This document shows, one piece after another, positions 13,758-64,000 of a stretch of DNA of 64,000 nt. Within the stretch, counting starts at the first letter, position 1. Every line of letters starts with the position of its first letter. Source of the DNA: Marsupella aquatica. Its lineage: Eukaryota; Plantae; Marchantiophyta. The position numbers and the translations under genes were made by a program. The DNA lies in contig OZ316898.1 of NCBI GenBank assembly GCA_973895155.1, forward strand, positions 18,239,292-18,303,291, read 5' to 3'. The notes under the pieces were generated by a model, which was not told where the DNA came from, did not search any database, and was given only the letters and a program-made list of their open reading frames with translations.

Positions 13758-14681
13758 TTTGCCGTATGAATTTTGGAAACATTCACTGTGCAACTTTCGA
13801 ATTCTCCAACTTCCTGATTGACATACGAGGAAAGTTTCCGGCAGTCACATCCTTAAAACAATCAGCTTCCCAATCAAAGGAAAACAATCAGCTTCCCAAT
13901 CGGGGTGTCTGTAATTCAAAATCTTGTCCTCTCTCACTGGGAGCGAGATAGAGGACGAGCTTCAAGATCGCCTACTTCGGGTCGATGAAAGTTGGCTGTT
14001 TAGGGTAAACTCTGACATACATGAAGTGAGAAACATTCAGAGTCTATCTCTACAACACTGATCCACTTCTGGGAACTCTACTCGTGAGATTAACCTTCAA
14101 TGAACACGGCCAAAGCATGATCCGTCCGGCATTGGACATGGGCGACATTCTCTGCCTTCCTCGAAACTGCATCAAGACCTTCCTAGCTTTTCCCCCCAGT
14201 CGATACTACTTATCCTGTAGACGATCGAAATTCATGAAGCCGTGGATCCCTGATGACCATCATGACATAACTACACACGCGATTTCTCTCTCAAAAATTG
14301 AGACATCGGTATCACCTTGCGAGCCACATCCATCTCTCTTTCTTCCGGCTCCCCGCGCCACGGCTCAAACGGAAGAAGCAGAAGGTCCGGGGTTTAATAT
14401 ATATTTCATGCGTGTTTTCCTTTGATTGCCAAGAATTTGTTGATGTCAATCCGATGATCGGTGCGGATCCCAAAGGAACGAAGACGTGCTGTCCATCCGG
14501 TCGGCCTGATGTCCGATGTCAGACTTTTCAAACGAAAGCTTATCGAAGTGGATTTCCTTGAAAGTTCGCTCCCACGCCAAACTGGACCATAACTGATAAT
14601 GTACGAAAGTACTGCAAATTTCCGTTGAAGTTCCGGTGACGAGAGGTCGTGTAAGCCATGGAAATGTGGACTTGAGTAACA

Positions 14682-16263
14682 CGGGGGAACCCAAGGGGAA
14701 GCATCCTAGACACGCAATCACCGTTCCCAATATTTCTCCTCTCCTCGATCCCTCCTGTTTACAATCTGCATGCTGTGTCCACCATCCACCTGCTCACTAT
14801 TAAGTAGCTCATTCTTGACGGATGGATGGTTGCGCTCGATCAAGGTCGGTGGGTACCATAGACTTTTCTATCCAAGTCGAAATGTCTAGGAGTCCGATTC
14901 GTTACGTAAAAGCCGAACGAACAAGGAAGCAGCATCGCTTGGCTTTTGAGCAAGAGCTGGATAATTAACAATAAACTTATTACTCTCTGGAGTCTGCAGT
15001 CTGTAGCTCTTTCCATGAGCGAGCTCGCGACGATGAACGCGGGAAGCTGAGGACGTTGAGATGTCGTAGGACATGTTGCGTATATATACAGCGCTAAAGA
15101 TGCACTCTCTGGGGTGAAGAAAAATGAGTGTGCAACCTCTATCCATGAGCTCGCTAACGGACACGAACGCGGGAAGTTGAGGACGTTTAGATGTCGTAGT
15201 ACAGGTTGCGTATATATATATAGATCGACAGCACTAAGATGTATCTCAGCGATGAGAAAAGTTTATCCACTCTTCGTCCGTTTGGGAAGTACCTACTAGC
15301 TAGCGCCTTCCGAGAAATCGTGAGTGGATTGCTTGCAATTGTCGAGAGATGTGGTTGGGAAAGTCCATCGAAGTCTGTACAACGCGCGGGTCACATTGTT
15401 TTCAGGTTCTTGAAAATTTTCCTCTTGTAGCAGTCATGCAATGTTTGGAGAGAACTATTTTGAGGTTCTTAGAATTTTTTCCATTGCCTGTGAGTCATGA
15501 GTTTGGAGAGCAAATAATTAGGAAATGGCTGCAAATTTCAGCGGGTGTCGTCGTAGCAATGCAGGTAAGAAATCCTCAAATGCTTTCAAGTGTAATGTTG
15601 CAATTGCAGCTTCTGGCCTGCAGCATTGTGCGTAGTTACAATAACAAGGATCCATCATCTAATCTAGACTAGTCACATTTTCAGTTTGATTTACTAGGAT
15701 ATCAAATGACTGTCATGCAGTCAATCTTTTTGTCTTCATGTCAATCTGGGTCTTGCCAGTTTTATTGAGTCAAGTTTCTTCATGGATGTTTTGTTTGCGG
15801 GTCAAAAGAACTTCCTCGTGGACTAGGTTTCTAAGAGGCATTCACGAAGAACATTGGAAAGTCAACGGTGCTTCTGATCGAGAAGTCCACAAAATGTCAA
15901 GAAAACGCCCAAATAGGCGTTCCAGAGTAAGGGCAATGTGTTAATTGGGTGGAAACGCCTCTCGGCGTTTTCTGGATGTCGATGGCGTACAATCTACTAA
16001 GCAACAACCTCTCCAGTGAAATGCAAACTACAAAATCGATCGTCGTGAGACTTTCCCCTTACATGGGAATCGGCTCAACGATCCTCATTTTCTACGGGGT
16101 AAAGTTGAGGGCCGAGTCTTATTTCCCGGAACACTTAGGACGACGTCAAGATCCTAATCATCCAGCTGCTGGTCCTGCAGCCAATCCTGACCGGCTTGCA
16201 ATTGATCTAGTCAAGCTCGTCGACGCAGGAGCAGAGAAAAATGATCACGATCTGATGGGTCTG
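14682..16263 (+). repeat. Segmental duplicate of 48859-50434 (upstream region and 5' end of gene B)
   Basis: Colinear, highly similar sequence from GGGGAACC.AAGGGGAAGCATCCTAGACACGCAA to GATCTGATGGGTCTG. Confidence 0.92.
15894..16263 (+). pseudogene. Truncated, frameshifted copy of gene B exon 1 (B')
   Basis: MSRK start; +1 nt (GGCAATG vs GGCATG) before NWVETPLGVFW; homology stops abruptly after EKNDHDLMGL. Confidence 0.85.
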
Positions 16264-16487
16264 ATTGTCTCGCTGCACAACCGAAACGTCAAACGCGATC
16301 TGATGGTAATTCGCCCAGAAAATAAATGGCAATCCTCGACGTTGTGGAATTACTGGATGGTTTCCCTCAAGTGTTCCAAACCTCCAGCAGCAGGACCCGA
16401 CGGCCTAGTGCTGCGAAATAATGCTGATCGACTGAACAAAACAACATTTTCAGCAGGACAACTTGTGAAAATCCAAATCTGACTGAC

Positions 16488-20800: not shown

Positions 20801-22779
20801 ACAGGGACTGGAGCTGCACCAGTATTTAACCCTATGGTGAAATTCTTTGAGGTACTGAAGCAGAACTATCAAGGTGTGAGAACTGATAAGTTGAAGGGTC
20901 TCTAGGAGTTTCAGCGCAAGACTGGAGAGTCTACGGGAGGCATACACTCGTATGCGCAGATTGATCATTGTCACCAAGGGAGTGATAGAGGCTCAGGCAG
21001 TCCAGTTTTGATATGCAATTTTGGACAGAGAGTTGTGATGCAAAGTGAGAGATGTCACTCTGCTTAGGGATGCAGATCCCACATTAGCAGTTGTTTTTAC
21101 CCTTTCTGAGCGCATTGAGCTCAATATGGTGAATGAGAAGGTGGTGACTTCTGAATTTGCCAAGGAAGCACCAAAGGCTGCATCTACATCCACACCACAG
21201 CCAATTGCACGAGAATCTACCAGCTAGAGACCTGTGCCCTCTCTATTATGCTGGACAACAGTCAGGATGTTGGACCTGTGGTGGGGATCATGCACAGGGA
21301 TATTGCCCAGATCATAGAGGATCAGGGGGAGCATCAGCGCCTGATCAGCGACAGTGTGATCATTGTGGAGCTCCTGGACACACCAAGGATAGGTGTTTCT
21401 CACTCCATCCTGAGTTACGGAGGAGAGGATCCCGTACACATGATCAGGGAAGAGGAGGAGGAGGAGGTAGAGGTGGTGGACGTGGTCGTGGCATGCCACA
21501 TGCAGGGAGACAGGGAGGTGACGCTGCCCCTGCTGTAACCATAGATTCAAAGGATGCTAAGATTGCTCAATTGGAGCAACAGCTAACTGCCATGGCTAGT
21601 TCCCAGGTGAGACCTACTTCTGATGATGGGGCATCTACATCCTATGGACCTTCCACATCCCATGGTCCTTCCACATCTTATGGAGCTGATGGAGACCTTG
21701 TCACCATGGGATTCATGTGTGGCACTGCACATATTGATGCATCAGCAGCTTTGACACGTGGGGCAGCCAAAGTTCTTGAGCCCCGAGGAGCAGTAGTGGA
21801 GCTAGATCCATAGAGGGGGGATGCACATCGGCAGAAAAGCTTCCTCAGTCTTTTACATTGTCAGAGATAGTTCAGACTGCCTCTATGAACCCGGTTCAGA
21901 CAAACCCTGGCGTGGGTAAGTTGGCAAAATTAGGTAGTGATGCAGCAGGGATGACAGGTACCTTGCTGGGGGCGGCTACTACCATAGTGCGCACCCCATT
22001 ATTTTCAGCGATAGACATGCTGAACTTGGGAGTTGGTCCTACATAAGTGTTCAGATTGGCAGCTACACTTTGTGAGGACACTCCAGTTGTTGCTTCCCAT
22101 GCAGAAGTAGCTTGTAGTGTTGAAGCAGTGAAGACCATGCCACCTACTGCTACTAGTGAGACATGGTATGTAGTAGCAGCGAGGTTGGTGGATTTACCAT
22201 CACGCCCTGCATTTGAGAGGACTAGGTTTAAACCTAGTGTTGTGTCATTGGATAATCGGAGTGGTATCTTCCGATTAGTTGGGCCTTCTGGAGCAGTATA
22301 CTAGCCAGAGAGAGTGTTACTGGATACTGGTGCTCAGCCCTTGATGTTGGGGAAGTCTGCCATACGTGGATTGGGATTGCGTCTAGAGGATTTGGAGGAT
22401 TGTCCCTTTCCCATTCAGACTTCATTGGGGGGACCTACACCTACACAGCATATCACCGGGAGACCACTTGATTTGAGGATTCAGGAAGGTCATATCACAG
22501 ATAGCTCACAGATACAGGCGTGAGCTATTCTGACTAAGGCAGAGTCATCCCACCAACACATCATATGACTCTTCCTTAGTCAAAAGATTACCTGTTGGCA
22601 GTGTTGTGCCACCAGTGTGGGGCACTGCACAGGCCTTGCCACAGGCAGCAGCACGATTGGTACATGATGGATGGTGTCATGCTTTTACACCACAGTCAGG
22701 AGCAGAGCAGTCTCTTGCAGATGGACCTGTGACTCTTTCACCATTGGATACCACTCCTATCGCTTGGCAGTATCCACCA

Positions 22780-23750
22780 TAGGGTATTTGCTTGTTGGAT
22801 CTATTTGGTGGGATTAGCACTGGATTGGCTGTTGTTCTTCAGGCAGGAATTCTGGTGCGTCGCTATTTGTATGTGGAGACAGATGAGACAGCACGGAGGG
22901 TCTCATTGCGGCATGTGGCTATGTTGGTGGATAGATATCCACAGTTGCTGCCAGTGGACGTTGTTCATGGTTATCAGCATGCACTACCTGCTGATATTTC
23001 ATTGTTGGGGGCGGATCATTTGCATCGTGTTGGCCCCATTGATTTGGTGATTGCTGGTTGGCCATGTTAGAGCCAATCTAGAGCTGGCATTGGGTATGGA
23101 CTTCATGATCCACGCTCTGCATTGTTTTGGGAGATGTTACGGGTGCTACATCATCTCCAGCTACATCAGACACAGTCTCCAGCATACATTTTGGAGAATG
23201 TGCCATTGTTAGGTGATGATCGTCATCGGATTGTTGCCAGTGTTCATCAGGTGAGGTCTTGGATTGGACCTGCTGTGTTATTGGATGCTGCACGTGTGGG
23301 TTCTCGTGCACATCATCCACACTTGTGGTGGACCAATCTGATCCCATGTGAGGTACTGAAGCGTGCATTTGACAGCATTCCACGCTCAGCAGCCTTAGTG
23401 GTAGATGATATTTTGGATCCAGGCCGTCGTGCACAGGGTGTGACCCAATCTGACAGACCTCCATTGGCAGTGGTCAATGTAGTTGGGCGCCCACGTTGTG
23501 CATTACCCACTCTTGTGAGCCACTCTGCTTCATATGCATTTAGAGCAGGTGGCCCTGGACTTGTGTGGGACACAGCCCTACAGCAGTTAGTGGAGTCTAC
23601 TGCTGATGAGAGGGAGCGTGCCATGGGATTTTTGACAGGCACCACTGCAGTTGCCTCTATGTCAGAGAGTGCATGCCGCCAGGTCCTTGGTCAAGCACTG
23701 GATTTGAATTGCTTGACTTGGATTATCAGCTTGGGAGTAGCTGAACAGTT
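22780..23750 (+). pseudogene. C5 cytosine DNA methyltransferase domain within the gypsy pol region
   Basis: Motifs in canonical order: I LLDLFGGISTGL, II YVETD, IV IAGWPC* (CAG>TAG at 23068-23070), VI YILENV, VIII-like RAHHPHLWWTN, X RQVLGQALD. Confidence 0.88.
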
Positions 23751-26700
23751 GAGGATGCGCTCTGCTAGTGTTACTAATCGTCCATTGGTGAGCTTGCGGT
23801 CTACTGAGACAATGATGACCACAACTAGGGGCGAGCAGATAGTCCATGGACCTATGGCAGGATTGGCCAAGGCTGGACAGATTGTTGAGCAAGAAGGGAC
23901 TGCTCAATCTACTACTAAATAGCAATCATCGGCTATCTCTTCTACTCTACAAAAAGATATTAGGGATTTGGTGGAGAGTTGGGAACCACAGCTTGGCCCT
24001 AAGTTGATAGGGGAGGAGAGACGTCGCATGCATCGATTCCTGAAAAATTACTGGAATTGTTTTGCATTTAGCATGAAGGATTTGGGGACATTAAAGGGTC
24101 CTGGTATTCAGATTGAATTGGCTAGTGATGCGCCAATCTTTCGTAGGCCATACCGTTACAGTGACATGGAGAGAGCTTTGATTCAGAGCAGAACTCGGGA
24201 TTTGTTGGAGGCTGGATTAGTGGAGATTTTATATGGGGAGTATGCATCTGCCACTGTGATGCCAGCCAAGAAGGATATGCATGGCAATTACACAGATAGG
24301 CGCATGTGTGGTGATTACAAACCTATTAATCGCCAGACAAAATCTGATAGATATGCCATGCCCACACCTGAGAAGATCTTTGATGCTGTGAGGTATGCAA
24401 AGGTTTTTAGTTCATTGGATCTGAGGGCAGGGTACCATCAGCTTCCAATTGGGCATTCTGACAAGTCCAAGACAACATTCTGGGGGATTGATTCTTATGG
24501 CAAAGATCGTTTGTATCAGTGGTTGTTCTTACCATTTGGGTTAAAGAATGCACCAGCTGAGTTCCAGAGAGTCATGGATCGAATCCTTGCAGGTTTGGAT
24601 TTTGTCAGATGTTATATTGATGATATTTTGGTCTATTCTTCTACTGTGGAAGAACATCAGCAACACTTGCAGATTATGTTGGAGAGATTGAGAGCACATG
24701 GGTTGAAGCTCCATCCTAGCAAGTGTAAGTTCTTCCAAGACCAGATTGAGTATTTGGGCCACACTATATACCCAGGGGATTGGGTGTACAGCAGACTAAA
24801 GTGGAGGCCATTATACAGATTCCTTGTCCTACTGATGTGAGTAGAGTTCGTGCATTCTTGGGATTGGCGAGTACTACAGGAGGTATGTTAAGGGATTTAG
24901 CCAGCTTGCCAAACCTTTGACCATACTTACTAAGTTGGATCAGGAATGGATTTGGGGTGATGACCAGGAGCATGCCTTTCAGGAGTTGAAGCAAAGGTTG
25001 GCATCATCCCCTATTTTGAGAAGACCCATTTCAGGCAGACCATTTCAGCTACACACTGATTGGAGTGGAGTAGGACTTGGAGCAGTGCTGACTCAAAAGG
25101 ATGATGAGGGGAATGAGTTTGTTGTGGCTATGCCAGTAGATCAAACAATTCAGTAGAGGCTAAGTATAGCTCTTATGAGGGAGAGTGTTTGGCAGCAATG
25201 TGGGTTGTTGCACACTTTCATTGCTACTTGTTTGGTAACCCCTTCACCTTGATCACTAATCATCAGCCTCTTAAGTGGTTAATGGAGTCTGACAAGCTTA
25301 CAGGGAAGCTTGCACGATGGGCATTGTTGTTACAGGAGTATGATTTCCAGGTGGTGCATAGGCCTGGAAAAGAGAACTTGGATGCAAATGGATTAAGCTA
25401 CAATCCATGTACCAGTCAGTAGGATGAGACTGGAGCCAGATGGCATGATGAGTCAGATAAGGAGATGGTGCCAGGATGACATGCATCTGCCTTTCTTTGT
25501 TGGGTGCCAGCATACAGTGGATCTGTGGACTCTACCTCATTGGATGGAGTGGATGATGAGTCTTCAGATGTGGATGTTGGTGAGGTAACTTCTGGACAGC
25601 AAGATATTCACAATGATGTGAGAGTGTTGGAATATCTACGCAGTGGTTCTATTGTCGGCAGTGTTGATGCCAAGGAACGTGACAAGGTTCTACAAAGAGC
25701 CAAGAGGTTTCGATGGGAGGGAAACCATCTTCTGAGAGTACTACATGATGGTAGGGTGTTGGTGGTACCAAAACCATCACAACGAGTACATTTGGTGCGA
25801 CATGCGCACAAGGAGTTGGGTCACTTTGGTGTGAAGTGCACTTACAGCTTGCTGTAGACACGGTATTGGTGGCATGGTATGCACACTCATGTCCAGCAGT
25901 TGATAGCTTAGAAGTGTGTGGTATGTGATAGAGTTTAAATGATGCTCTCACTCCCCAATTGCACCCGTTGCCGATCATGGGTTTGGGATATCGTTGGAGT
26001 TTGGATTTGTTGGTTCATTACCTCTTACCCAACGTCATAATCGGTAAGTTTTGGTCATGGTGGAACACTTCTCTAAGTGGATTGAGCTAGTGGCGTTGCC
26101 AGATAAAGCCAGTGGAGGAGTTACTGCTACATGTTTGGATCGCGTACTCAATCATTTTGGAGCACCAGCTGAGGTGTTGACTGATCAAGGAATTGAGTTC
26201 CATGGAGAGTTTGAGAGTTTGTGTGAACAAGCTCTGATTGATCATCGTACTACCTCTCGTGATCATCTTGAGGCAGATGGATTAGCTGAGAGAGTTGTGC
26301 AAACTGTGAAGAGAGGATTGCGTAAGTATGGCTTGTAGGTTGGTCATCTGGGAGATTGGGATCTCCAGCTACCTTGGTTAGCTATGGGCTACCATTTCAG
26401 TCGGCAAGCATCACTTGCATCCTTCTCACCTTACTTTTTGCTCTATGGTAGAGAGCCAGATTTGCCAGCAGCTATTCGTCGTGATGCTGCACTAGTTGTG
26501 AACTTGGATGATCCTGATGTTTGGGTCAAGGTGTGTTCAGAGAGAGCATGGGTATTTCAGAGAGTGATGCCCATGACTTTTGACAACCTTGCCATTGCCC
26601 AACATCGTGATACTTTGAGGTATGCCACTATTCGTGGAGGAGGTTATCGTGCAAGCATTCAATGATTTCATCCTGGTGATTATGTTTATTTGCAGCAGAC

Positions 26701-34046: not shown

Positions 34047-35824
<1,778 letters not shown>

Positions 35825-46145: not shown

Positions 46146-48030
46146 TTCAAAGCCAACAGGGGGACAAATACTATAATTGGCACTCACTATGTTATAGTCA
46201 CTAAGAACCTGGATAAAGCTGTCCGTTATGTTGGACGGCATGATCTGAAAACTGCGATCACTGGAAAATCATGCATCAGTGCTGTTCTCCAGTCCTACAA
46301 ATTGACAAATCGCAACTTTAGAATTAGTGAGAGCAACTGCTGTGTGATCAAATATACAGTATGTCAAAGGACGAGGTATCAGCTCTTGCTTCGAACCCTC
46401 TCCCTACTGTATGACATCTACTGTACATAGTTCCCTAGACAATTGGTAAGTTTCGGCCATCTCTACTGTATCTGGACTGCTAGCCCGGTGACATACAAGC
46501 CATGGAACTGGTAGCACTCACTCAGTGACGTCACATGACCTATCCTCTGGTAGGCCTCCGAAGGGAATATCGGTTTGCATCAGGTTGTCAACAATTAGTA
46601 TTGGCCTTTCAGTGCTAGTATTGCTGGAAGTATGATCTTCCATGGGCCTAGAACTTGGTTTTTGGCTAATCTCTTCAAGAGAGACAGAACTGCCTTCCAA
46701 AAGCCTGATCTCAGCTGAGGGCTAGGACCGCTGCTAACATCTTGCAACAGGCCGGATATCCTCAACAGGTGGTGCACGAGGGCTACTCTAGTGCTGGTAG
46801 TGCAGTATTAAACGTTTAATACTGCTGTAGTTGATATGTTGCATCAATTGGCAATTCCTGGTTGAAGAGCTAAAATTTCCTACATTACTTAACATTCTGA
46901 TTTAACCCTAAAGTTAGCTTAATCATTGCTAACCTAAGTCATTATGAAAAAAATGAGAAGCCCACCCCTTTTCTTGAAAGGGATTCACAATAGTTTAGAA
47001 GCTAACCAGTTGAATACTACAAAAATGACATAGAGGATAGAAGTGGGCCAATACTTTGTAACTGACTAAGTGATGAGAAGAAGACACTTTATAAAGAAAT
47101 AAGCATTGAAGCACAAGTAGCAAGTCACCCCAACCAATTCATTCTTGCTGTAAGTGGTTACTAAAAAATTCATCCAAAATCTAAAAAATAATGATTAATT
47201 ATTCTTCTCAACCTGGGAACTCGCCTGGGAATCCTTTTGAGCATGAAACACTACAGAACAAACCACTTTATTGAAACTTTTTTGGGGGGAGGGGGACCTT
47301 CACACTTTTAGGTACCTTAAAGAATACTTGTTTTTTCATTTATCTAAATACAATAGTCTTAAAAGCTTTTTATTACCATTTGGGGGAGATTGCTTAAAGT
47401 TGGAGCAACCCTATGCTATATGGCAGAACCTCGTTACTAAATTTCTTCATGTTTATTTTAGCATAAATTAGAATCCTAATGTGGTCAGATTACAATGAGA
47501 CATTTCCCAAAATATTGACCCCATGGATAATTTTTCAAACCCAGGCTTTTGCCAAAAAGAACTCCTTACTTGTGATTTAAGTTTTTATTCCTTTAAGGTA
47601 AATGTAAGGTTACATTTAACCCTAGTGGTCAATGATTTATATTAACTGCATCTTTCTCTACCTTTGTACTAGAGAGAGAGTGGTGGGTGTAGAGGGGTTT
47701 ACTATGGTTGTCCAGTGTTGAGTGGACAATTCAGTGTTTTAAATGCTTGCGTGTCTTTACGAGCACTGAAATTTTAAGAAAAGAGCCAAAGTCTGCAGTC
47801 AAAAGGCTTAAAAAAAAACAATTGCAATCTCCATCTCTTGGAAAAACATGAATCCACTATTCCATTGATCTGTTTAGTGTGAAACAATTGTCTCGGAAAA
47901 CATTGCTGGGGACACCTAGGCCAAGCTCGGCACACCTCGCTGCACACCCTCTCTATATTACCACTTTTGGGAAGGACGCCCTAAGTAAGTAGTTTGGGCA
48001 TGATTGACCAGTGACTTACCATGGGGTAAA

Positions 48031-48841
48031 CTAGTTGAAACCGGTTGCAGACGGTCAAGAGCCTGACTGCTTACCGGTCACATCCCAGTCCAAATTGTAA
48101 AAGGTGCTATCTGAGTCTTTTTTGCCGTTTGAGCCAGTCCATTTAAGCTTTGGAATTCCATCCGGGTTCAGAGAAAATCCCTTGGTCTGATTTTTCCGAC
48201 ATATGTACTCTTTTACTGTGATAAAGCACTTTCTCATCTCTCCAAGAAGAAAGTCTTTGTTCTTCTCAGGACCTTTCCATTTTTCTCTTGATGGTTGTTT
48301 TATTGGCAATCTGTGATTATTTTTGTAGTTGAGAATGGTAAGTTGAGGATGGCTTTACAAGATGTGAGGCCCAATGGGAGGGCATTCTTGACTTTTATTC
48401 ACCAAGCAAATTGGAGGGTCACTTTGGGGGGGAGGTGTTCACCCCCACAAAACTCTGGTTGCATGTGAGTGGTGGAAGACTCTGGTTGTGTGTGGTGGAA
48501 GCCTTCCAAAGATATGTGTGAGAAAAAACAGGGCATGTTTTATTCATTGGTCAGCTTCAAAGAACATTCAATAGGCCTGTTTAATTGTAGAAAAACTTTT
48601 CTTAAAGTTTTTTAAGGGTTATAAAATTCAAAGTGTGTGGTGTAAGACTTCCAAATATATGTGTGAGAAAAAAACTGTGCATGTTTTATTCATTGGTCAG
48701 CTTGAAAGAACATTCAATAGGCCTGTATAATTGTAGAAAAACTTTTCTGAAACTTTTATAAGGGTTATAAAATTAAAAATGGACGGGTTTAAAGAATGAA
48801 AAGGAGAGGCAAAAAAGAAATCATTTGCTTTATAATATAGG
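48031..48841 (-). mobile_element. Possible Helitron remnant containing a ~143-bp tandem duplication (48505-48780)
   Basis: 3' imperfect hairpin CCGTCTGCAACCGG then CTAG|T; 5' end CCTATATTATAAAGC (TC expected). Confidence 0.4.
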
Positions 48842-50068
48842 TCGAGAGCAACCAGCGTAGGGGGAACCGAAGGGGAAGCATCCTAGACACGCAAGCAGCG
48901 TTCCCAATATTTCTCCCCTCCTGCTTAGACAATCTGCATGCTGTGTCCACCGTCCATCTGTTCATTGTTAGGTAGCTCAGCCTTGACGGATGGATAGTTG
49001 CGCTCGATCAAGGTCGGTGGATACTATAGACTTTTGTACCCAATTGGGAATTTCTAGGAGTCCCACTCGTTTGTAAGAGCCGAACGAAGAAGCTAGGAAG
49101 CAGCATCGCTTGACTTTTGAGCACGAGATATATAATTAACAATTAACTTACTACTTTCTGGGGTGAAGAAAATGAGTCTGAGTGTGCACTCTGCAGCTCT
49201 TTCCATGAGCGAGCTCGCGACGATGAACGCGGGAAGCTGAGGACGTTTAGATGTCGTCGGACATGTTGTGTGTATCTGTACAGCACTAATGCACTCTCTG
49301 CGGTGAAGAAAGATGAGTCTGCAAGCTCAATCCGTGAGCTCGCCAACGGAGACGAACGCGGGAAGTTGAGGACGTTTAGATGTCGTAGTACAGGTTGCGT
49401 ATATGTATAGACAGCACTAAGATGTATCGTAGTAATGAGAAGAGTTTATCCACTCGTCCTCCGATCAGGAATTACCTACTAACGCCTTCCGACAAATCGT
49501 GAGTGGATTGCTTGCAATTGTCGAGAGATGTGGTTGGGAAAGTCCATTGAAGTGTGTACAACGGGGTCACTTTGTTTCCAGGTTCTTGAAATTTTTTCCT
49601 CTTGTAGCAGTCATGCAATGTTTGGAGAGAACTATTTTGAGGTTCCTAGAATTTTTTCCAATGTCTGTGAGTCATGAGTTTGGAGAGCAAATAATTAGGA
49701 AATGGCTGCAAATTTCAGCGGGTGTCGTCATAGCAATACAGGTACGACATCCTCACATGCTTTCATGTGTAATGTTGCAATTGCAGCTTTCTGCAGCATT
49801 GTGCGTATTTACAATAACAAGGATCCATCATCTAATCTAGACTTGTCCCATTTTCAGTTTGATTTACTAGGATATTAAATGACTGTCGTGCAGTCAGTCT
49901 TTTTGTCTTCATGTCATTCTGGGTCTTGCCAGTTTATTGAATCAAGTTTCTTCATGGATGTTTCTTGTTTGCGGGCCAAAAGAGCTTCCTCGTGGACTAG
50001 GTTTTTAAGAGGCATTCAGGAACAACATTGGAAAGTGAACGGGTGCTTCTGATCGGAAAGTCCACAAA

Positions 50069-53000
50069 ATGTCAAGAAAACTGCAGTGGTCCAGAGTAAG
50101 GGCATGTGTTAATTGGGTGGAAACGCCTCTCGGCGTTTTCTGGATGTCGATGGCGTACAATCTACTAGGCAACGACCTCTCCAGTGAAGTGCAAACTCAT
50201 CCAAAATCCATCCTCTTGAGACTTTCCCCTTACATGGGAATCGGCTCCACGATCCTCATTTTCTACGCGGTAAAGTTGACGGTCAAGTCTTATTTCCCGG
50301 AAAACTTAGAACGATGTCCAGATCCTAATCATCCAGCTGCTGGTCCTGCAGCCAATCCTGACCGGCTTGCAATTGATCTAGTCAAGCTCGTCGACGCAGG
50401 AGCAGAGAAAAATGATCACGATCTGATGGGTCTGTTAAACTATGTCATCCGTTGTGCGAGGGAAAAGGATGAAGGGTATAAGGATCTACTTAATTTTATC
50501 GACTCTCAGGATGACGATAAACGTGCAACACTTCCTGGACCTGTAATTGCAAACGGGATTGCAAACGACTCGAGTCGAGCTCAGTCCACATGTTCGCCTC
50601 AGATTGGGTGTCTTGGGAACAGCACGATGCAAGCTCCTGCCCAGCTTGCCAATTCAGCTCTCATAGTGCCCGTTGGAAGATCTGAGCAGGCACAGAATGC
50701 AAGTTTATGTGCTCATCTGGTGTTGTCGTCTGTCTTGCCTTTGGAAAGCAGCAGCTCTGTGGCTCAGACGCTCACAGCTTCATCTGCTCATGTGGTCTTG
50801 ACAATCGACACCAAGGACTTGGTGACAGATGTGAAGGGAGTGTATGTCCCGGAGGACGAGGGAAGCGGCTCGAGATTGTTGTACAGGAGGATTGAGCTCG
50901 GGCCCCAGATTGGCGAGTTAGAAATTGGCAAATTGAGGGTGCAGATGATGGAATCTATGGAGCTGGCCCGCAAGAAAGACGAGAACTGTACATTGCAGTT
51001 CGGATCATTTGCGGTGTTAAGATACACTGGTAAATATCAGCTGAGATGGGTTTCAAATCCTTATTGCTCATCGATGAAACTGAGTTTTTTGGTGGGCTGG
51101 AAAGAATCAATGAAACCTTTCAATTGGCAACATAATGGTTTGATTTGTTGGTTTTGGTATGTAAATTACGAATTCAATTCTGTCTGTCATGTCATGAGGG
51201 GAAAATAGATAAGACAGCTCCTTTTATGATATGATATTTAATAGAGGGTGAGTGGTTTTCGTGCCTTGTACAAAAAGAAACTATAGATACGAACGAGTAA
51301 AGTGGATCACCATGATAATTGCCCCCCCAAAAACCTGGATAATACTCACACAATATATATCACACAATGTAAATTTGTATTGAGTTCCACACTTCTAAAA
51401 CTGATGACACAATTTCTTGAATCTTGTAGACAATGGCCCAAAATGGTGGAAGCTCCCAAAAAATTGCACACCAACAATATGTAACATTCAGAGGTCTCCT
51501 TGGAGCTTACTAGAGTTTCTACCTGGTAAGATATATTATGTGCTACATTGGAGTGTACTGCTACCATTGGTTTCAATACTAGTTGGAGTCACTTACCTAT
51601 GACTAACCCTATGCCTGTGCGTTGCACACTTAGGGTTGTAGCTGGGTTGTCCAAGCACAAGTTTTGTCATTTCAGTTTGGTGGTCATTGCAAAAGACCAT
51701 GTTGTTTTTATTGGATGTCCCCGAAGGGACAAAAGACCATGTTGTTATCATTGCAGATTGAAGTGTAAGTTCATGTTTTGGCTGGGTAGTTGTTGTGGAA
51801 GTGTCCGCTTGTGAGAAAGAATGGGCATCATGAGGAATTGTATGGGGACCTTCCTTTGCTTATGGATGGGTATTCGAGCTAGTTATTTACAAGCAGATGG
51901 GTTGGAATGGCCCCGAGTTTCAAAGACCATCAATCAATTCTTCACATTATTTGTTTATACTTGGGGCAGGGTTTCCCCCCACAGGCTTTCCTCCTTCCAG
52001 ATTTAGAAAAAAATGGTTTCCATGCAGGTAGGAGGGCCAAGTGGACAATTACAGGGTCTAATCTCCAAAGTGCAACATTGAGAGCTACTACATCTGGAAA
52101 GGGTGAAGAGTTAAAAGTCCTAGAATACTTTAAGGTACGTGTATACGTTTTTCTGAATGTTGGGTTTGAAAATGTTTGTATAAGTGTACCTAAGTCCAGA
52201 TGTATTTGATTTTTGTTTTGAAGAGAACTCTCTAGTGTACGCCCATATTTTTTAGAGTAAAGAGCACTGTACTGTACATTGTCTTGCATGTAAGACATTC
52301 CAATTGTGAACTACTAGGAAAAAGGCTCTAATTGTTCCACGCAATTAGATAACCAAAGTTTGCTCTGTATAGACAAGGAGCAACGAGGATGTTTTGTTGT
52401 GTGAAGAACCCGATTTGGTGCGGAATTCAGCTCCAACATTTCCAGAAAAAGTTTACATTTGTGCTTCAAAAGCTGTGGAAGTAGAAATGGGGGCCACCAT
52501 TAAACTGCAAAGCGAGGTCAGAAGTGTTAGAAGAGTATACTGGAATTCAGGTATTCACTACTGATATACCCCGGCCGTAATAACTAACTGAGACCAACTA
52601 GTATTGTTTTGGTTGAATTCCTCTGGCAACGAGGTCAAAACCATTCAAATCTTACATTTTGTGGCTTTTCCCTTTAAGTCTTTTATTTCATGCTTGAGCA
52701 TTTATGCAGTGTAGTCGAAATTAATTTATATGCTTGGTTACTGAACCTATTCTTGCTTTGCTTTGGACAGTTGTGAGAGGTCTCATACCAAGCCTACCAA
52801 CCATGATCACGCTGGCAGTGTTGTACTTGTTGGGAATAATGAGAAGTGCTAGTCATGGGGGACACAATGCCTCCTCTCCCAATGTGGCCTTTGCTTCTCT
52901 TGGCCGTCAATATGTTCACAAGAATATTGCTGGCTTACTATTGGAATGGAGCCCTTTTCTTTCAAGTATTCTGAGGGAGACATATAAGCTTTTCCTAATT

Positions 53001-56000
53001 CACATATTCATCATGATCCTTTCCATCTTCCTTTTCATTATGTGGCGCCTTTCACATATTAACAATATCACAATATTAGGTAAGTTAATTGCTCACTCCT
53101 TGGGGTTTAACACGAAGCCCTGATATGCATTACTAATATAATGAACAACTGTTTTATTAGTCATGGTTAGTACTGTTGTTGAAATATTTGTAAAGAGGGA
53201 AGTTTTCACTGCTATGTGAGGTATGTTCTAGCAAGTGAGTCAATAATGATGTTGTGATCGAAAGTAATTTTCAAAGCTGGTTAGATGGATCTAATAAAAT
53301 TGAAGGGAGACAGTTTCTGATCAAAATCTAAGTAGATGTTACTTAGAAGTTATCTTAAAGTTACTTAAACTTCTTTGATGCAAAAATCAGATCATTCTAC
53401 ATCTCCAGTAGAAGAACATTTGATGGAGACAATACTGATTTATAGTAGTGACGTGTTTACACTTACAAAATTCAGCTATTGGCTGGTTTATGCAATTTTT
53501 GTTTAGTAAACACAAATCATGGAATGCTTGATATCGCAGATTTTGATGTCCCAACCCTTGAGATAGCACCTGGTGTTGAAGGGACAACTAGCAGCTCAAG
53601 CCCTACAGCTACAACAAGGATTGAGGAGGACGAGGTGGAAGATACTACCAACGATCCTGCCAGTCCTTCAAGTGTTGCAGTGGTTGAGGACCCCTTGCTG
53701 AAGACTTTCATGCCCTCTCAGCCAGCAGGTAGGTTTAGTGAAGTTATTTTGCTATTGCACAAGGATGTGTTATTTGAGTCTTATGAGCCCGCTCTTGAAT
53801 AATATGGATGTGTTCTCATGCATAACTATTGTGAAGTTTCTGGAGGTTTAGGGCTTAGTGAGCTGTTCTTAGAGCCCTTTAATTGGGCACACCAAACAGC
53901 CCTGCCATTGAGGAGATTTACCAAGCCAGAGAGGCACCTGTGCATCAGGGGTCTTGAAATGGACTTAGGGTTCCCCACCTGTCCCCAAAACCCTCAGCCG
54001 CAGTCCTCACCAGGAGAAAAGCAAGTACACTCAACAGTTTATTCACTGTTGGGTCTGAGCTAGCCTAAACATTACTTTGAGCTAGCTTGTCCTGAAATGC
54101 TAGCAAGTCCAAGTCATGAGGTAACAATGTGAACAGTGAGATTAGAGTGGGATGTCTTGTGAATTTGATGATTCCTGATTTTAAAAACTTAGAATTAGTT
54201 GATTCATCAATATCTGAAGAATCTGTATATGTATCTGCATAGGATTGTAAGTTGATTTGTCTCCTATAAGTACTCTTCTCAGCATTGATCGGCTTAAAAC
54301 TGTCAACCACCAGCTTATTCCTACATTTCATGCCCATCACTTGCTTGAATTTCAAGACCTGCAGTTGAGAAAAATTAACCATTGAGACTTTGAGGGAACA
54401 ACGACACAAGTGCCTGCCCAACACTTTTTCGTTTGCACCTGGTTTTAGTGATAATCTGGGGAAGAATGTTTCGCACCCTGTGAAGTACCCAATGTTTTCT
54501 GGGCTAAGGGTCGTGCAAGTAAGTGGAGGAGAATTTAATTCCACAGCCCAAAGAATTGGGGCGCATGACAAAAGTAAGTCTTGCAAGAGCGCTTTGAGTT
54601 TCAGATTGCAAACCAAGTAGTTGACCATTACCGAAATGGGATAGCTCGAATTGCTGAAGAGCAGGCCGTGGATGTTGTGCTCGCAGGGGCAGAGCTTGAT
54701 CAAGAGAAATGTCTTGGTCCAGGTCTGGGAGATCTCCCACAACGTTGCATAGAATCCATTCTCCGCCTGACAACACCAAGGGATGTGGCGAGATTGGCCT
54801 GTGTGAATCGGCTTTTCTATGCTGCATCATTCTCTGATTTGGTATGGGAAACAATGCTGCCACCTTCTTATTCTGACACTCTGGACGAGGCTCAAAGTGT
54901 ACTTCCAAGAACTTGTTCAAAGAAGGAGATTTACGACTTTTTGTGCAACCGAGTTATTCTCCAAAATGGCACCTGTGAGTATTGGCTGGACAGGGCAACT
55001 GGAGGAATCTGTCAAATCATTGGGGGCCGAGGATTGAATATTGCTTTGGGAAATGATAGACGATATTGGGATTGGGACCGTAGTCGACGAGGGGCCAGGT
55101 CCATTAAAGTGGCCTATCTCAAAGAAGTCTGGTGGCTTCACATCTCAGGCAGATGGGAGTGCTCCCTCTCGCCTGGAACTTACACTCTGTCCTGGAGAAT
55201 CTTCCATCAATTCACTGAAAATGTTGGGCCTGTGAGACTCTCTTTGGAGGCTACTGGTAATGCAGCAGTTGAAACCGCTTTTGATTTCACACCGGAGGGT
55301 GCAGAGCCCTTGAAGAATCTGCTTGCAGGACAGCAACAATCATTTGTTTGCAGATGGGACCAGGACAACTGGATGGAGCTTGATGTTGGAGAGTTTATTG
55401 TTCAAGACAAAGGTTCGCCAGTCTTGATCATGTTTTCTATGCAGGAGACTACGAAATATAAGAAAGACCTGTATCTCGACGGCGTTATGATTCGTCCCTC
55501 TTATCTCATAGCAAATGAGAGATCTAGATACAGCAGGCATGAGGCCGGTTCATCAACAAGAGGTACCCGAAGAAGTTTTAAGAGAAGGACAATGAGTACT
55601 GTTTTTGAATGGTTGTGTTTCACGAATAGGGTCCAAATGTCCAACTATACACAATTGCTTTTGTCATCTCTCAAAATCGCTTGTTGAGTTTCTCATATTG
55701 GTTGTTGTTCTTGTCTGCAGATACCCTCAAACCCATATTTGGTCGTTCTACTTCTGGCTCTGGCAAACCACATTGGGAAAATGAACAGGTAAGCTGTCTC
55801 CAGCTTTGACTATAAGTTGCCAGTGCACAGAATTGAGAGTCGTGATGTGCATCGCAGCCTCTTAAGGGGTTACAACCAGTAGCATGAAGCTTTGAACGAT
55901 CAACGATTGTGGCGACAGTTCCAAGGGAGATGTTTTGCAGACGTTCTGTTTTTTCTAACCCAATTTTCGATACCGAATTATCATAGTGATGTTATTTGGC

Positions 56001-58813
56001 TCCTCATGAACAAACAGATGGAAGAAATGCAAGAGAACTTCCAGTATTTGCCCAAGCAAATAGTGGGGATTGATCACATCTTGGAGGAAGTCAAAAACAA
56101 GCTTCAGGAGGTGACTAGCTTGGGTCTGGTGGGCATGGGAGGGATTGGGAAGACTACACTTGCCAAGGCCTTATTCAATACCTTGCAGAGTCATTTCGAA
56201 TTTACTTTCTTCCTTGAGAACGTGAGTAACATCAGAGATTGGGTTGCGGATGCCATGCAACAACAGATAATTACGGGGAAGCAGTTTGCAGGGACTGAAG
56301 ATCTGGTGAGATTTTTGAGAGGAAAACGATTGTTACTAGTAATAGATGATGCGGTTTCAGATCTTGATATACTGCTAACATTGATCGATGTTGTTCACCA
56401 AGACAGTAGGTTCATTGTAACGTCCAGAGACCCCGAACTGTTATCTCTTACGAACGTTTTCGATGAAATCTATCATGTTCCATTCCTAAGCCCACAAAAT
56501 TCGGAACTACTGTTCACGACCTACGCTTTTGGGGAAGACGAAACAATTCCTCCTCCAATGCAAACATATGTAGACATGGTTGTGGAGAAGTGCGAAGGCT
56601 TGCCCCTGTCTTTAGAAGTCATAGGCAAGTACCTCCGGCGTCAACCTGAGTCGATTTGGGTTGAAGCTATAAAGGTCCTGGACAGGGAGAAGAACGTGGC
56701 CGGCTTGAATGATAAATTGTGGGCGAAGCTTAGGCTGAGTTATGATGGACTGGACGAAATTGAGCAGAACATGTTTCTCGATGCTGCAACAATATTCTAC
56801 AATGAGGACATAGTGAATGCAAATGCAGCCTGGAGCATCATCATGAATGGATACGAACCCATGCCCTGGCAACATCTGCTGGACTTGTCGTTGGTGAGGG
56901 AATTGAAATTGAAGTATCTCAGCAAATGCAATGTACGAGTTGGCATGCATGAGGTGCTTACGGGGCTCGGGAGGAAGATAGCTTCGACTCTTCCTGCGGA
57001 ACATGGCATCAGGATATGGGATAAAGACGTTGCAATGTCCCTGTTGACAAGAAAGAACTCCAGTGAGGATGATGTGAAGGTGATTATTCTGGCCCTCAAG
57101 TTTGAGAATGGTTTACAAGTACAGTACAGGGTTGTGCATTCAGTTTGCTCGTCAAACGTATTGAGTCTCCCTAATTCATTCATTCCTAGCCTACAGAACG
57201 ATTCATGTGGCAAGGTCCACTCTGACACTGACACTAAAGAGCTAGAAGCGGCACCTCGGTTGTTTGGATTTTCAGGACATTGTTGCTTTGAAACTGGATT
57301 ACGATCACAGAGAGGAGATCATCAGCGGAGACGAGACGGTGAGATGCCTAAACTTAATTTGGAGCGACGTGACTCATTTCCGTCAGTATTGTTAATGTGC
57401 TGTCGTTGAACCCTGACTCGAAGCCAATGCCACACCTTCATCCCAATCACCACCACCTGTGGCTAGATGTACCTCTAAAAATTCATTCGAAACCTCTCCT
57501 CACCATGTAGCTACCTTAGGGACTAATCTGTTGGTGCTATGGATGTGCTTCAGCAGGTCATGGCCAATACACGGCTCAGCGTTGTGGGCAGCACTCTGTA
57601 CAGAATGAGAAAACTGCGGTACTTGTCGTTGCGAAACATAAACATTGATGATGGTGTCACATTGCCGTCCACCCTTCTTTACCTTTCATTGGACGGTGTA
57701 AACTTCAGTGATCTCGTTTTCGATCCAGGGAACTATTACCAGATGGCTGTTCTGAGTCTGGTTAACTGTACTGGACTTAAAAATCTACCTACTATGTTTG
57801 GGGAACTCTGTTCTCTTCAGGTGCTATCTATTTGTAAAAATGCTGATTTGGAGAGCTTGCCTGATTCGTTCGGGAATTTACATGAACTAAACCGTCTGAC
57901 GATTGAAGACTGCATGGCTTTAGGGGAGCTCCCGGAGTCAATTGGCGGTCTGATAGGTTTAAGAAGCTTGAAGCTGAAGGAGTGCCATGCTCACTTGCCA
58001 GATTCATTGTGGTACCTACCGAGGCTCAGCACGTTGGAAATCGTTGACTGCTCTCTTCGTGAGCTCCCAGACACGATTGGCGATTCAATGTTTCGTTTAG
58101 AAACTTTAAGACTGAGAGACTGCAGTGCTCTGTCAGTCTTGCCAGATTCTTTTGGGAGGCTCCGGACGCTTCATAAGTTGGAAATTGTGCACTGCTCTCT
58201 TCGTGAGCTGCCTGATACATTTGGCAGGTTAGTATCTTTAGAAAGTTTAAGTCTTCGTCACTGCACTGCACTGTCCGTCTTGCCGGATTCGTTTGGGGGC
58301 TTAGTGGGGCTTAAGAAGTTGGAAATAGAAAACTGCTCTCTTCATCGGCTACCAGAAACCTTTGGTGCTTTGACAGCTCTAGAGAGTTTGAGCATTCGTG
58401 AATGCAAAGCCCTGTCAGTCTTGCCTATTTCGTTTGGGAGCCTGCCAAAGCTTAGGAGGTTGGAAATTGCGGGATGTCATCATCTTCAACAGCTCCCGGA
58501 TTCTTTCCTGGAACTAAAAACGCTGGAACACCTCAGCCTAAAGCAGACAACTTTGCAAAACATTCCCAACCTGGACAATCTAAAATCACTAAAAACTCTT
58601 GCATTAAGTTGGGTTGCAGAACCAAAACTGTCATGCCCAACATTACCGACTTGTTTAGGGGAAGTGATCACAGCAACGAGCTTTGATCAAAGAGACTTCA
58701 CCTTCAGTGTCTTGGATGGAGAATTCATCTATAGCGGATTGCCTGACGTTGGGAATGGGGCTCCGCAGCAGAGTTGGAATTGCAGTACTGAGCTGAGACG
58801 ACGGAGGAGGTAA
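50069..58813 (+). CDS. Gene B: predicted ~1721-aa NLR with shared TM module + F-box + PP2 lectin + NB-ARC + LRR; exons 50069-51029, 51430-51525, 52028-52134, 52373-52550, 52771-53079, 53540-53728, 54687-55562, 55721-55788, 56018-57079, 57276-57338, 57557-58813
   Basis: Eleven GT/AG exons join without a stop (5166 nt). F-box LGDLPQRCIESILRLTTPRDVARLACVNRLF; PP2 GNDRRYWDW..VAYLKEVWWLHI..WMELDVGEF; P-loop GMGGIGKT, Walker B LLVIDD, SRFIVTSRD, CEGLPL, MHE; about 11 LRRs of the LxxLPxSFGxL type. Individual domains are high confidence; a single transcript is less certain, especially across 53728-54687. Confidence 0.7.
54687..55562 (+). CDS. F-box/PP2 (phloem protein 2-like) exon
   Basis: F-box followed by PP2 lectin motifs as in plant PP2-A/B F-box proteins. 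Confidence 0.9.
56018..58813 (+). CDS. NB-ARC-LRR portion of the NLR
   Basis: Full set of NB-ARC motifs, linker exon DIVALKL, LRR exon with 23-24-aa repeats. Confidence 0.95.
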
Positions 58814-59471
58814 ACGAGATTTTGATGTGCCGCTGTATTCGCTACCCTTGCCCATGGAGAATGGTTTTCCCAGCCTGAAACGGAGGCAACTACTATACTG
58901 GCTTCCCGGGACGTGAGTTTCCCCAGAGAGTGTGGCTAGGCTGGCAGTGAAATTTTCGTCACGAATGGCACTTGACGAGGCATGCCTTCACAAGTTTGGG
59001 TGGCCAAGCGGTCGGGTCCGGAGTGGGAAAGATCCCTTGGAGCTTTTCGAATGGAGGCCACGCACAAGAGAGTTTTGTACTTTGTTGGAATGGTTGCATC
59101 CATGGTGGAGGTTGACTCCAACTGAGTAATCTTGGCGGGTTGTTGTTTCAGGTCCCGACACAGACCCATTAGTTGTTTCTGTGAGTTCTCCACCACTTCG
59201 AGGGAGAGAGGCAACTGCATTTAGATTTATCACCTTGCTATTGTTGTAAGCCTGACCGAGCTTCAAACAAGGAGAATGCGAACCTCGAGACTGTATGATG
59301 CGATTTGATGATCTTGTGGTTATCCGGTGACGATGTTGTGTTTTGTCATGATTGTGGGTGGACAGCCTTCCACAGGAATTTGTTGCTTTTGGAGCTATAA
59401 TTTTACTCTGGATTGCAACTAACTACCGAGAACAGTGCAAGGGCACGTCAGATCGAGCGAATTCTAAGAAG

Positions 59472-62141: not shown

Positions 62142-64000
62142 CTATCCGGCCAATTCAGCAATACGGTTTGCCCAGGGATTCACGCCAAGGTGCTCCAAGG
62201 GTCGGTCAGTTTCATTTCTGAGGCGAATGACCTCCGGAGAAGAGAGAGACTGGTGTTGGAATCCCATGAACGCCAACACCTGGTTGTCGGCGAAGTTCAA
62301 AGCTCTGTCGATGCCCTTCATGCAGGTCTTGGCCCCTGGAGTGTCGTCATCGGAGTGATGGCAAGGACCGCAGCCGGTGAAGTGTGTGATCCATGGCCAG
62401 CGGTGGTTCCCCAGCCCCGGATGATATTTCTCCATGAGTTCTTCAAAAGTGTCCACAATCGGAACCCACCATCCGCTGATCATGTATTCGGGCGAGTCCA
62501 CGAGCTTTACCTTCGCCTTGACAGCCTTATCGGTGATCATCAGATACGCAAGAGCGGACTGGTCATCGGCCGACCACTCGTTCCTGCCTTTGAGAACTCC
62601 TGACAAAACTTGGCCGTATGCATCTCTAGCTGGGCCCCGAGGTCCCATGGGGGACCACTTGTCAATCAGATCGAGGGTCCATTGACAGTTCCGGATCATG
62701 AAGACGCCAGCATTGTAAGAGGTCCAATGTTTTTCCTCGTAAAAGTAATCGTTGATACCCCACATGATCATGTTGTAGCCATCATAGGTCTTCCAAGGGG
62801 CTTCGAAGATCATGTCTGTGAAAATCGCATCGCTGTCGAGCCAGAAGAACCATTCGATCTCTGGATGAGCAAGCATGAGCGTCCGGATCGTTGGGAGCTT
62901 GACCCAGAAGCTGTCAAACAAAGGATCCAGCCAAACGAGATTGTAGTAGATCTCGTAGTCGTGCATCCGGGCGTAGTCCATCTTGAGCTTAAGAGATTTG
63001 ATGTGAAAACTGTCTCCCTGAGAACCATGGCATGGTCCCGGCTGGGATCCTGTCACGATGAGAACCCGTGGCTTTCCTTCTGGTGTTGTTCTCATTTTGG
63101 GGTTCGCACTCAACCAGCGTTCACGCTGCACATCCCAATCTTTTATGGTTGGACCGAGTAAGTAGGGCTCAGGGAAGACGAAAGGTTCGTCCTTCTTCTC
63201 CTCCTCCGCAGCGTTTTTTTGCACTTCAGCTGAATTCTCGTTCTGCCTCTGCTGCTGCTCCTTCTCAGTCTTTGCTTCCTCCGTCTCCTCGATTTTTCCG
63301 TCATTGGACACCTGTGGCTCCTCTTGAGATTCCCGTTTCTCTTTTAATATCTTTTGCTCATTCAACTCCTGCGCAGCGATCTTCAACTTCTCTACGTCCT
63401 CATGCTCATTCTCGTGGTCCCTTTCCTTGTGTCCCTGTAAGTGCAAACTTTGTTATTGATCAGATAAGAGGTGTCAAGAATTAAATTTCTCCCAAAAATA
63501 TTAGCAATCATCTTATCCTAGTGCAGGTTCAAGCAATGGGCGGGACGTTGCAAAAATAACTGAATCGGACTCTACGGATCAATTACATAGACGGATCGAA
63601 GATTAGTAGAGGTTGTTTGAAATTCGAGCCCCGTTTCGTAGTTTCTCGAGAAAGCAGACTTTTGACTCGTTACTGTCGTGTCCTCAGAAGTCACTACAGT
63701 AATTAAGGATCATTCTAGAGCTGAGATGTACGCACGTATTTTTTTTTTCGGACATTCCATTCATACAGATGGATGATCCCATCCTTAATTACAAATTCCT
63801 TACCTGCATGAGATTACGGGAAGCGAATTGCTCATGGTTGAGTAGTTGTCGATACCCGGCTATGGATCCTTCAAGTTTCGTCGTGTCTGGAGTCATCCTT
63901 CTCCCGTTATAATAATGCGTAGTCGCTGCATCGGTGGGAACCGCGTTGAGCTGGCTGAGGACTGTGCAGACCAGCAATCCGATCTGCAAGATGTTGTGGC
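62142..64000 (-). CDS. GT34-family glycosyltransferase (xyloglucan xylosyltransferase/galactomannan galactosyltransferase-like); exons >64000-63804 and 63434-62142, start outside the window
   Basis: PYLLGPTIKDWD, RVLIVTGSQPGPC, KMDYARMH, HPEIEWFFWLDSDAIFTDM (DxD), DDQSAL, WPWITHFTGC, RALNFADNQVL. Confidence 0.95.

Follow-up and report, generated by a model that had tools for sequence, protein, structure and literature searches.

A candidate F-box/PP2-NB-ARC-LRR fusion at a hydrolase-NLR-type locus of the liverwort Marsupella aquatica

Introduction

In a 64,000-nucleotide stretch of the Marsupella aquatica genome (GCA_973895155.1, contig OZ316898.1, positions 18,239,292 to 18,303,291 of the forward strand; hereafter the window, whose first letter is position 1), an F-box and a PP2 lectin domain stand just upstream of the NB-ARC domain and leucine-rich repeats (LRR) of a nucleotide-binding leucine-rich repeat receptor (NLR). 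The question raised by this locus is whether the two parts are spliced into one protein and, if so, where that protein begins. The first-pass annotation had joined 11 exons between 50069 and 58813 into a single giant NLR, in which two transmembrane segments around a domain X, followed by a linker, precede the F-box.

We found that this is a real, unusual, lineage-specific chimeric NLR locus in a liverwort. For a fusion of F-box/PP2 to NB-ARC-LRR by splicing, we estimate a probability of about 0.5.

Results

Layout of the F-box/PP2 and NB-ARC-LRR parts

All searches were run exon by exon, with each exon as a separate query. On the plus strand, the Pfam matches are co-linear in the order F-box and PP2, NB-ARC, and LRR. 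The open reading frame (ORF) 54581-55684 contains an F-box-like domain (PF12937, E = 8e-6) and a PP2 domain (PF14299, E = 2.5e-23), the ORF 55892-57406 contains an NB-ARC domain (PF00931, E = 1e-28), and 57539-58810 matches several LRR families (among them LRR_14, E = 1.5e-33). There are four long plus-strand ORFs within 50069-58813, and the F-box/PP2, NB-ARC, and LRR frames are all open. Furthermore, the locus has what is expected of a plant NLR: an NB-ARC with P-loop, Walker B, GLPL, and MHD-type motifs, readable in the translation as GMGGIGKTT, LLLVIDD, GLPL (GLPLSL), and MHE, and LRRs at the C-terminus. Both the NB-ARC and the LRR parts are covered by alignments to homologues, and the intron between them has no fixed boundaries. 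Exons 1-8 were rebuilt from GT/AG sites. The exons from the F-box onward are as follows:

F-box/PP2 exon, 54687-55562, plus strand: single exon, with the F-box at about 54728-54856 and the PP2/Nictaba lectin domain at about 55007-55498
Bridging micro-exon, 55721-55788, plus strand: 68 nucleotides, phase 1 to phase 0
NB-ARC exon, 56018-57214, plus strand: 3' end uncertain, in-frame homology to 57088-57217
LRR exon with stop codon, 57554-58813, plus strand: acceptor at 57554 or 57557, homologues align over 57542-58726

The rebuilt exons 1-8 gave the phases 1,1,0,1,1,1,1,0, identical to the series of the first-pass annotation. The sites 53728|54687, 55562|55721, and 55788|56018 are genuine splice-like sites, as had been claimed, and the 68-nucleotide exon does turn the phase-1 donor 55562 into the phase-0 acceptor 56018. 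The earlier total of 1721 codons fared less well, as it needs combinations of 3' exons that end the NB-ARC exon at about 56932-56953 and cut the MHD region. This total is doubtful because homologues align in frame through the MHD region, and the homology-guided 3' end gives about 1775 codons.

At this 3' end, the hydrolase-NLR motif DDVK.I.ALK occurs twice, at 57068-57112 (SEDDVKVIILALKFE) and at 57267-57314 (DFQDIVALKLDY), about 200 nucleotides apart and in different frames. The repeated motif points to a small local duplication, which makes the NB-ARC/LRR intron hard to place. An Rfam scan of the window gave no match.

The NB-ARC-LRR part comes from the hydrolase-NLR clade

The best full-length matches of the NB-ARC exon (HMMER) are 45-52% identical to it, and the NB-ARC of these proteins begins at about residue 280-330. 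The N-termini of the closest relatives are DUF676-type alpha/beta-hydrolases. The named relatives are from Calypogeia fissa and Riccia, and one NB-ARC fragment (P0008) is 84% identical to the NB-ARC here. In some relatives, the roughly 200 N-terminal residues align to a hydrolase exon found elsewhere in the window, in a block that we call block A:

Block A, 8467-13793, minus strand: five-exon module at 13793-10738, then a hydrolase-NLR-type alpha/beta-hydrolase exon at 9260/9234-8467

By this homology, the NB-ARC belongs to the liverwort hydrolase-NLR (Hyd-NLR/HNL) clade. Homology to the NB-ARC of the relatives starts at the first codons of the exon at 56018. In two Calypogeia fissa hydrolase-NLR genes that were mapped (P0010 and P0012), the hydrolase extends over two exons, which are followed by a phase-0 intron and then by the NB-ARC exon. 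The Calypogeia junction reads AAG|GTAAAC ... CAG|AAT GAA GAA ATT CCA GAG AAT TTC, and the junction 56017|56018 reads cag|ATG GAA GAA ATG CAA GAG AAC TTC. Because its position and phase match those of the Calypogeia intron, the acceptor 56017|56018 is taken to be an inherited one. The ancestral gene had coding exons upstream of the NB-ARC.

Neither tblastn nor a profile of 12 hydrolase heads found a hydrolase in 48000-59000, and the sole hydrolase exon found is that of block A (9234-8467), on the opposite strand. The locus groups with the hydrolase-NLR clade and has its phase-0 intron, and it has no N-terminal alpha/beta-hydrolase in the same gene, the feature that defines a hydrolase-NLR. As far as these searches can tell, it has lost all hydrolase-coding exons of its clade. 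The NLR seen in the first pass is thus real, but its derivation from hydrolase-NLRs and the loss of the hydrolase had been overlooked. The interpretation of 55916-55960, in frame with the NB-ARC, as what remains of the last hydrolase helix was rejected: the hydrolase profile gave it no score, and the Calypogeia helix lies in a separate exon.

Three hydrolase-NLR relatives (P0011, P0016, and P0028) begin with MGxxxS or MGC, resembling an N-myristoylation/palmitoylation signal. These starts hint that membrane attachment may be common in the clade.

The F-box/PP2 cassette

The F-box/PP2 frame runs over 369 codons (54578-55684) between stop codons at 54575-54577 and 55685-55687. It is open in DNA of 44% GC, and the family-invariant residues are all kept. 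No ATG occurs between the upstream stop codon and the F-box; an ATT at 54605-54607 stands directly after ttcag, and homology to F-box/PP2 relatives begins only at GLGDLP. Stand-alone homologues, a mark of domains integrated into NLRs (NLR-IDs), do exist. The nearest are liverwort F-box/PP2 proteins of 270-333 amino acids (48-53% identity), and two of the relatives, from Calypogeia (270-283 amino acids), stand among unrelated genes.

The PP2 domain aligns to the full-length Nictaba structure 8AD2 (residues 5-165), and the order of F-box and then PP2 (Nictaba) is that of F-box-Nictaba / PP2-B proteins; the start codon and the three-exon structure of that family are missing. Canonical genes are interrupted by introns at two places, ORF residues ~131 and 170-177 (L016 and L017 of Calypogeia and the seven moss-like metagenome loci L007-L013), and the cassette here runs uninterrupted across both positions. 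It is intronless and 5'-truncated, as retroposition yields, and is thus most simply read as a 5'-truncated processed copy. The first-pass annotation had recognized the domains of this cassette but had overlooked its intronless state. In addition, the tail after the PP2 domain is not conserved and has 62 amino acids, compared with about 10 in the Calypogeia proteins.

Trp15 and Trp22 are the sugar-binding Trp pair of Nictaba. The Trp22 equivalent is kept here. The Trp15 equivalent is Leu in the window copy (TTG, 55046-55048) and Trp (TGG) in contigs of other runs.

Four public sequencing runs, from two organisms and two studies, hold the stretch, and a second copy or allele, closely similar to the window sequence, is evident from their contigs. 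Among the listed differences, 10 of the 11 in a PP2 patch of 75 nucleotides (55037-55111) are non-synonymous, compared with three of seven in the NB-ARC. The patch sits in the first strands of the lectin domain and includes the Leu/Trp codon. Such a pattern would be expected of a rapidly evolving bait surface and of a decaying relic alike, and the sample is too small to tell them apart. In two of the runs (X3 and X4, organism B), 197 nucleotides of 54084-54282, within the 958-nucleotide intron upstream of the F-box exon, are replaced by 11 other letters, an indel polymorphism.

In Marchantia, the F-box/PP2 gene Mp1g08180 has a value of 3.89 in what appears to be the log2 fold-change column of one expression table (PMC11218826, supplementary file 5).

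The proposed splice between F-box/PP2 and NB-ARC

The micro-exon is bounded by a CAG acceptor, which is pyrimidine-rich, and by the donor CAG|GTAAGC. An exon as strong, in phase, open, and in the fitting length class arose in four of 2000 dinucleotide shuffles of the 455-nucleotide gap between F-box/PP2 and NB-ARC, and the gap contains no AATAAA. Furthermore, 55562 is the best donor in the ORF tail and has the phase that the micro-exon requires. A direct splice from 55562 to 55941 would also be in phase; homology gives it no support. Taken together, the join proposed in the first pass is plausible and has in its favor the ancestral acceptor, the non-random micro-exon, the best donor in phase, and an F-box ORF without ATG, but its layout was seen in none of the relatives searched.

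Several observations weigh against the fusion. The donor 55562 fits the consensus at only five of eight positions. No RNA run that holds the stretch was found among public sequencing runs, and the four runs mentioned above behave as DNA: exons and introns are both covered, intron-skipping joints are absent, and the only joints in the contigs are indels inside the 958-nucleotide intron. No PP2 was found among the 150 closest NB-ARC representatives or among 502 NB-ARC matches of 255-810 amino acids, and no NB-ARC was found near 17 other F-box/PP2 loci. Likewise, five F-box/PP2 proteins, 11 metagenome F-box/PP2 loci, and the contigs of P0001, P0004, and P0005 did not have the same layout; the same-layout searches used length and word filters, and absence there is not proof. 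The NB-ARC exon opens with ATG, and annotated relatives that begin with the NB-ARC exist (P0019, P0042, and P0053). No A-run that could be a poly(A) remnant occurs in 55563-55720, which leaves the absence of introns to carry the retrocopy reading. Finally, Leu replaces the Trp15-equivalent residue of the lectin in the window copy, and an excess of non-synonymous differences would equally be expected of a decaying relic.

The membrane module, the linker, and block A

Upstream of the F-box, five exons form a module with hydrophobic helices, followed by a linker exon:

Module exon 1, 50069-51083, plus strand: N-terminal hydrophobic helix, low-complexity stretch, and start of domain X (50741-51082); phase-1 GT donor
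Module exon 2 (domain X), 51430-51525, plus strand: AG acceptor and G|GTAAG donor, both kept in the paralogue
Module exon 3 (domain X), 52028-52134, plus strand: splice sites kept in the paralogue
Module exon 4 (domain X), 52373-52550, plus strand: TCAG|GTAT donor kept in the paralogue
Module exon 5, 52771-53079, plus strand: two hydrophobic helices; AG|GTAAGT phase-1 donor
Linker exon, 53507-53728, plus strand: acidic, Ser/Thr-rich; phase 1 in, phase 1 out

Tblastn and tblastx match module exons 1-5 (50069-53079) to a minus-strand paralogue in block A (13793-10738), with identities of 28-64% per exon. Exon 1 is 43% identical over 114 amino acids to 13220-12879, exon 2 is 64% identical to 12053-11946, exon 3 is 47% identical to 11796-11662, and exon 4 is 63% identical to 11375-11196. 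The splice sites are kept at every module junction in both copies, and exon 5 ends in a phase-1 donor in both (53079|53080 here and 10738|10737 in the paralogue). This conservation marks the module, with its hydrophobic helices at either end, as a genuine and old spliced unit. Pfam (with each exon), homology search, and the ESM Atlas revealed no relatives or domains beyond the paralogue, and the 379-amino-acid ORF at 50069 and smaller pieces at 52734 and 53479 had no Pfam match. The ancestral 5' end of exon 5 (52715-52770) is broken by a 1-nucleotide deletion and an in-frame TAA at 52722. Since both lesions lie downstream of the ancestral acceptor, exon 5 can be used only with a substitute acceptor, at 52770|52771.

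The linker exon was equaled in strength in one of 1000 shuffles. It holds the only upstream in-frame ATG (53524) and could be the first coding exon instead. All four runs also contain a variant contig in which about 8% of the positions in 53300-53612 differ, with -2 at 53492-53496 and +1 T after 53533, and which rejoins the window sequence at 53612; the inserted T therefore causes a frameshift in the linker exon of the variant copy. No counterpart of the linker was found in the paralogue. Homology of the linker exon to an S/T/D-rich open frame of block A (10232-9951) was considered and rejected, with 12% of shuffles scoring equally high.

The hydrolase exon of block A lies about 1.5 kb past its module and has the nucleophile elbow GHCVG (Cys). 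It has its own ATG at the canonical hydrolase-NLR start and a possible phase-1 acceptor at 9261|9260. No NB-ARC or LRR was found after this hydrolase. A Ty1/copia element lies just beyond block A. At 15300-16482 (plus strand), head-to-head with block A, lies a recent and incomplete copy of module exon 1 that comprises the 5' flank and the first ~110 codons; its amino-acid identity is 86%, and divergence sets in after about residue 123.

Weighing the explanations

The start-less F-box ORF and the ATG that forms the first codon of the NB-ARC exon can also be explained without any fusion. The locus would then be a 5'-truncated NB-ARC-LRR ('NL') gene or pseudogene that begins at 56018, like the annotated NB-ARC-first relatives, with a dead or decaying processed copy of F-box/PP2 beside it. 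The PP2 differences, nearly all non-synonymous, the replaced key Trp in the window copy, and an architecture found nowhere else in the searches agree with this. However, the 369-codon frame has stayed open with its invariant residues, the strong in-phase micro-exon is left unexplained, the intact ancestral acceptor would be superfluous for a first exon, and only about 330 nucleotides separate the PP2 stop codon from the ATG. We regard this explanation as unlikely. The same short gap, with no AATAAA and no room for a promoter, speaks against two or three tandem genes, namely a module gene, an F-box/PP2 gene from the linker exon to the stop codon 55685-55687, and an NL gene. Such an arrangement would agree with the rule that F-box/PP2 genes stand alone, with the read-through ORF that ends at 55687, and with the ATG of the linker exon and its donor in phase with 54687. 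Nevertheless, the non-conserved 62-amino-acid tail, so much longer than in Calypogeia, and the shuffle statistics of the micro-exon make tandem genes very improbable.

If F-box/PP2 is fused to NB-ARC-LRR, the full 11-exon gene is a sub-case of this fusion, in which module, linker, F-box/PP2, NB-ARC, and LRR would form a membrane-tethered giant NLR. The phases of exons 1-8 fit such a gene. The phase-1 donor of exon 5 is a perfect AG|GTAAGT that lies 13 codons ahead of a stop codon, and the paralogue has a phase-1 donor at the same place. The phase is kept at the next strong acceptor (53507), and the 222-nucleotide linker exon that opens there is non-random. In addition, a hydrolase-NLR head lies about as far downstream of the module in the paralogue, where both a CTAAC branch site and a possible in-phase acceptor occur, and the Calypogeia hydrolase-NLR genes also have a 5' exon before the hydrolase exon. 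However, the DNA that follows exon 5 is rich in AT (GC 0.33) and contains AATAAT and AATAAA, as a 3' end would; the ancestral acceptor region of exon 5 is broken; and the variant copy has its frameshift in the linker exon. In block A, the hydrolase carries its own ATG at the canonical start of hydrolase-NLRs, the linker ATG 53524 offers a possible first exon, and the module is absent from the NB-ARC relatives searched and from the 6 kb upstream of two Calypogeia hydrolase-NLR genes. The domains, their co-linear order, and the phases of exons 1-8 in the giant architecture of the first pass are upheld, but a single membrane-anchored protein is not established. The join of the module to the rest, for which the donor 53079|53080 speaks and the AT-rich stretch, the exon 5 lesion, and the linker variant do not, is weakly supported, and we consider the giant gene doubtful. 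It is conceivable, if rather improbable, that the two blocks form a split membrane-organized hydrolase-NLR system, with the present locus (block B) as a tethered sensor without executioner and block A as module and hydrolase without NB-ARC-LRR. The shared five-exon module would then gather sensor and hydrolase at the membrane.

Other features of the window

Further ORFs were assigned by eye from their sequence or translation:

835-4947, plus strand: 1370-amino-acid open Ty1/copia-type polyprotein ORF (translation)
21157-24840, plus strand: gag/reverse-transcriptase ORFs of a second LTR-type (long terminal repeat) element (translation)
35272-35805, plus strand: ORF fragment resembling ribosomal protein uL5 (RPL11)
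62142-63446, minus strand: 434-amino-acid ORF resembling a GT34-type xylosyl/galactosyltransferase

Discussion

In the explanation that we favor, the fusion by splicing, an NB-ARC-LRR part of the hydrolase-NLR clade has kept its phase-0 intron and lost its hydrolase exons, and an F-box/Nictaba-type (PP2) cassette without introns or start codon stands in the place of the hydrolase. The cassette may be spliced from the donor 55562 to the 68-nucleotide exon (55721-55788) and on to the ancestral acceptor 56018, and the predicted product is F-box/PP2-NB-ARC-LRR. Translation would start upstream, at the ATG 53524 of the linker exon or, less probably, in the five-exon membrane module. In such a protein, the F-box/lectin would most likely be an integrated bait, making the receptor a sensor NLR-ID dependent on a helper for its output; a role as an SCF-recruiting output domain is less likely. 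The bait role is favored because the hydrolase head, which held the signalling position, has been lost, and because the patch of amino-acid changes lies at the sugar-binding face.

Hydrolase-NLRs are poorly understood receptors that occur mainly outside the flowering plants. If the proposed fusion is true, this natural swap of a hydrolase for an F-box/lectin would show that the N-terminus of an NLR can be exchanged via retroposition and reuse of an ancestral intron, and it would serve as a test of whether the NB-ARC-LRR of this clade works without the hydrolase. If the F-box/lectin acts as a bait, F-box-Nictaba lectins would be implicated as pathogen targets in bryophytes. The membrane module, found beside parts of hydrolase-NLRs in both of the old paralogues, offers an independent lead on how these receptors may associate with membranes.

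Chimeric genes that arise when a retrocopy is captured by a host gene are of the jingwei type. The cassette is likewise an intronless, 5'-truncated copy in the 5' region of another gene and is apparently connected to it by splicing, as far as sequence alone can tell. Here, however, neither a poly(A) remnant, a target-site duplication (for which no systematic search was made), nor a parent gene was identified.

The cassette resembles the F-box-Nictaba / PP2-B lectins (AtPP2-B family; PMC12355970) in having an F-box and then a Nictaba-type PP2 domain, but differs from them by the lack of a start codon and of introns, by the long tail that runs into a donor, and by Leu at the Trp15 equivalent. 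TIR-PP2 chimerolectins, such as Arabidopsis PP2-A5 (PMC12355970), also combine a PP2 lectin with an immune-signalling module in one protein; unlike the locus here, they have an N-terminal TIR and a C-terminal PP2 domain and no NB-ARC-LRR.

With the hydrolase-NLRs (Xue et al. 2012, PMC3352924; Chia et al. 2024, PMC11218826), the locus shares the phase-0 intron, the MHE motif, and NB-ARC/LRR homology, with 46-52% identity to Calypogeia fissa and other members of the class. However, hydrolase-NLRs carry an alpha/beta-hydrolase at the N-terminal position, where F-box/PP2 stands in the present locus. The main text of PMC11218826 describes NLR-IDs of non-flowering plants, some of them on hydrolase-NLRs, and does not mention F-box or PP2. 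Sarris et al. 2016 (PMC4759884) listed F-box and PP2 separately as domains integrated into angiosperm NLRs. Thus, the first-pass statement that no characterized NLR with this layout was known needs qualifying, since each of the two domains has already been found in an NLR. As in those NLR-IDs (PMC4759884), a domain of a host protein adjoins a complete NB-ARC-LRR and is in phase with it. The locus described here differs in that a liverwort hydrolase-NLR backbone is paired with F-box and PP2 together, as one complete PP2-B-type cassette, and this cassette would replace the signalling head rather than add to it.

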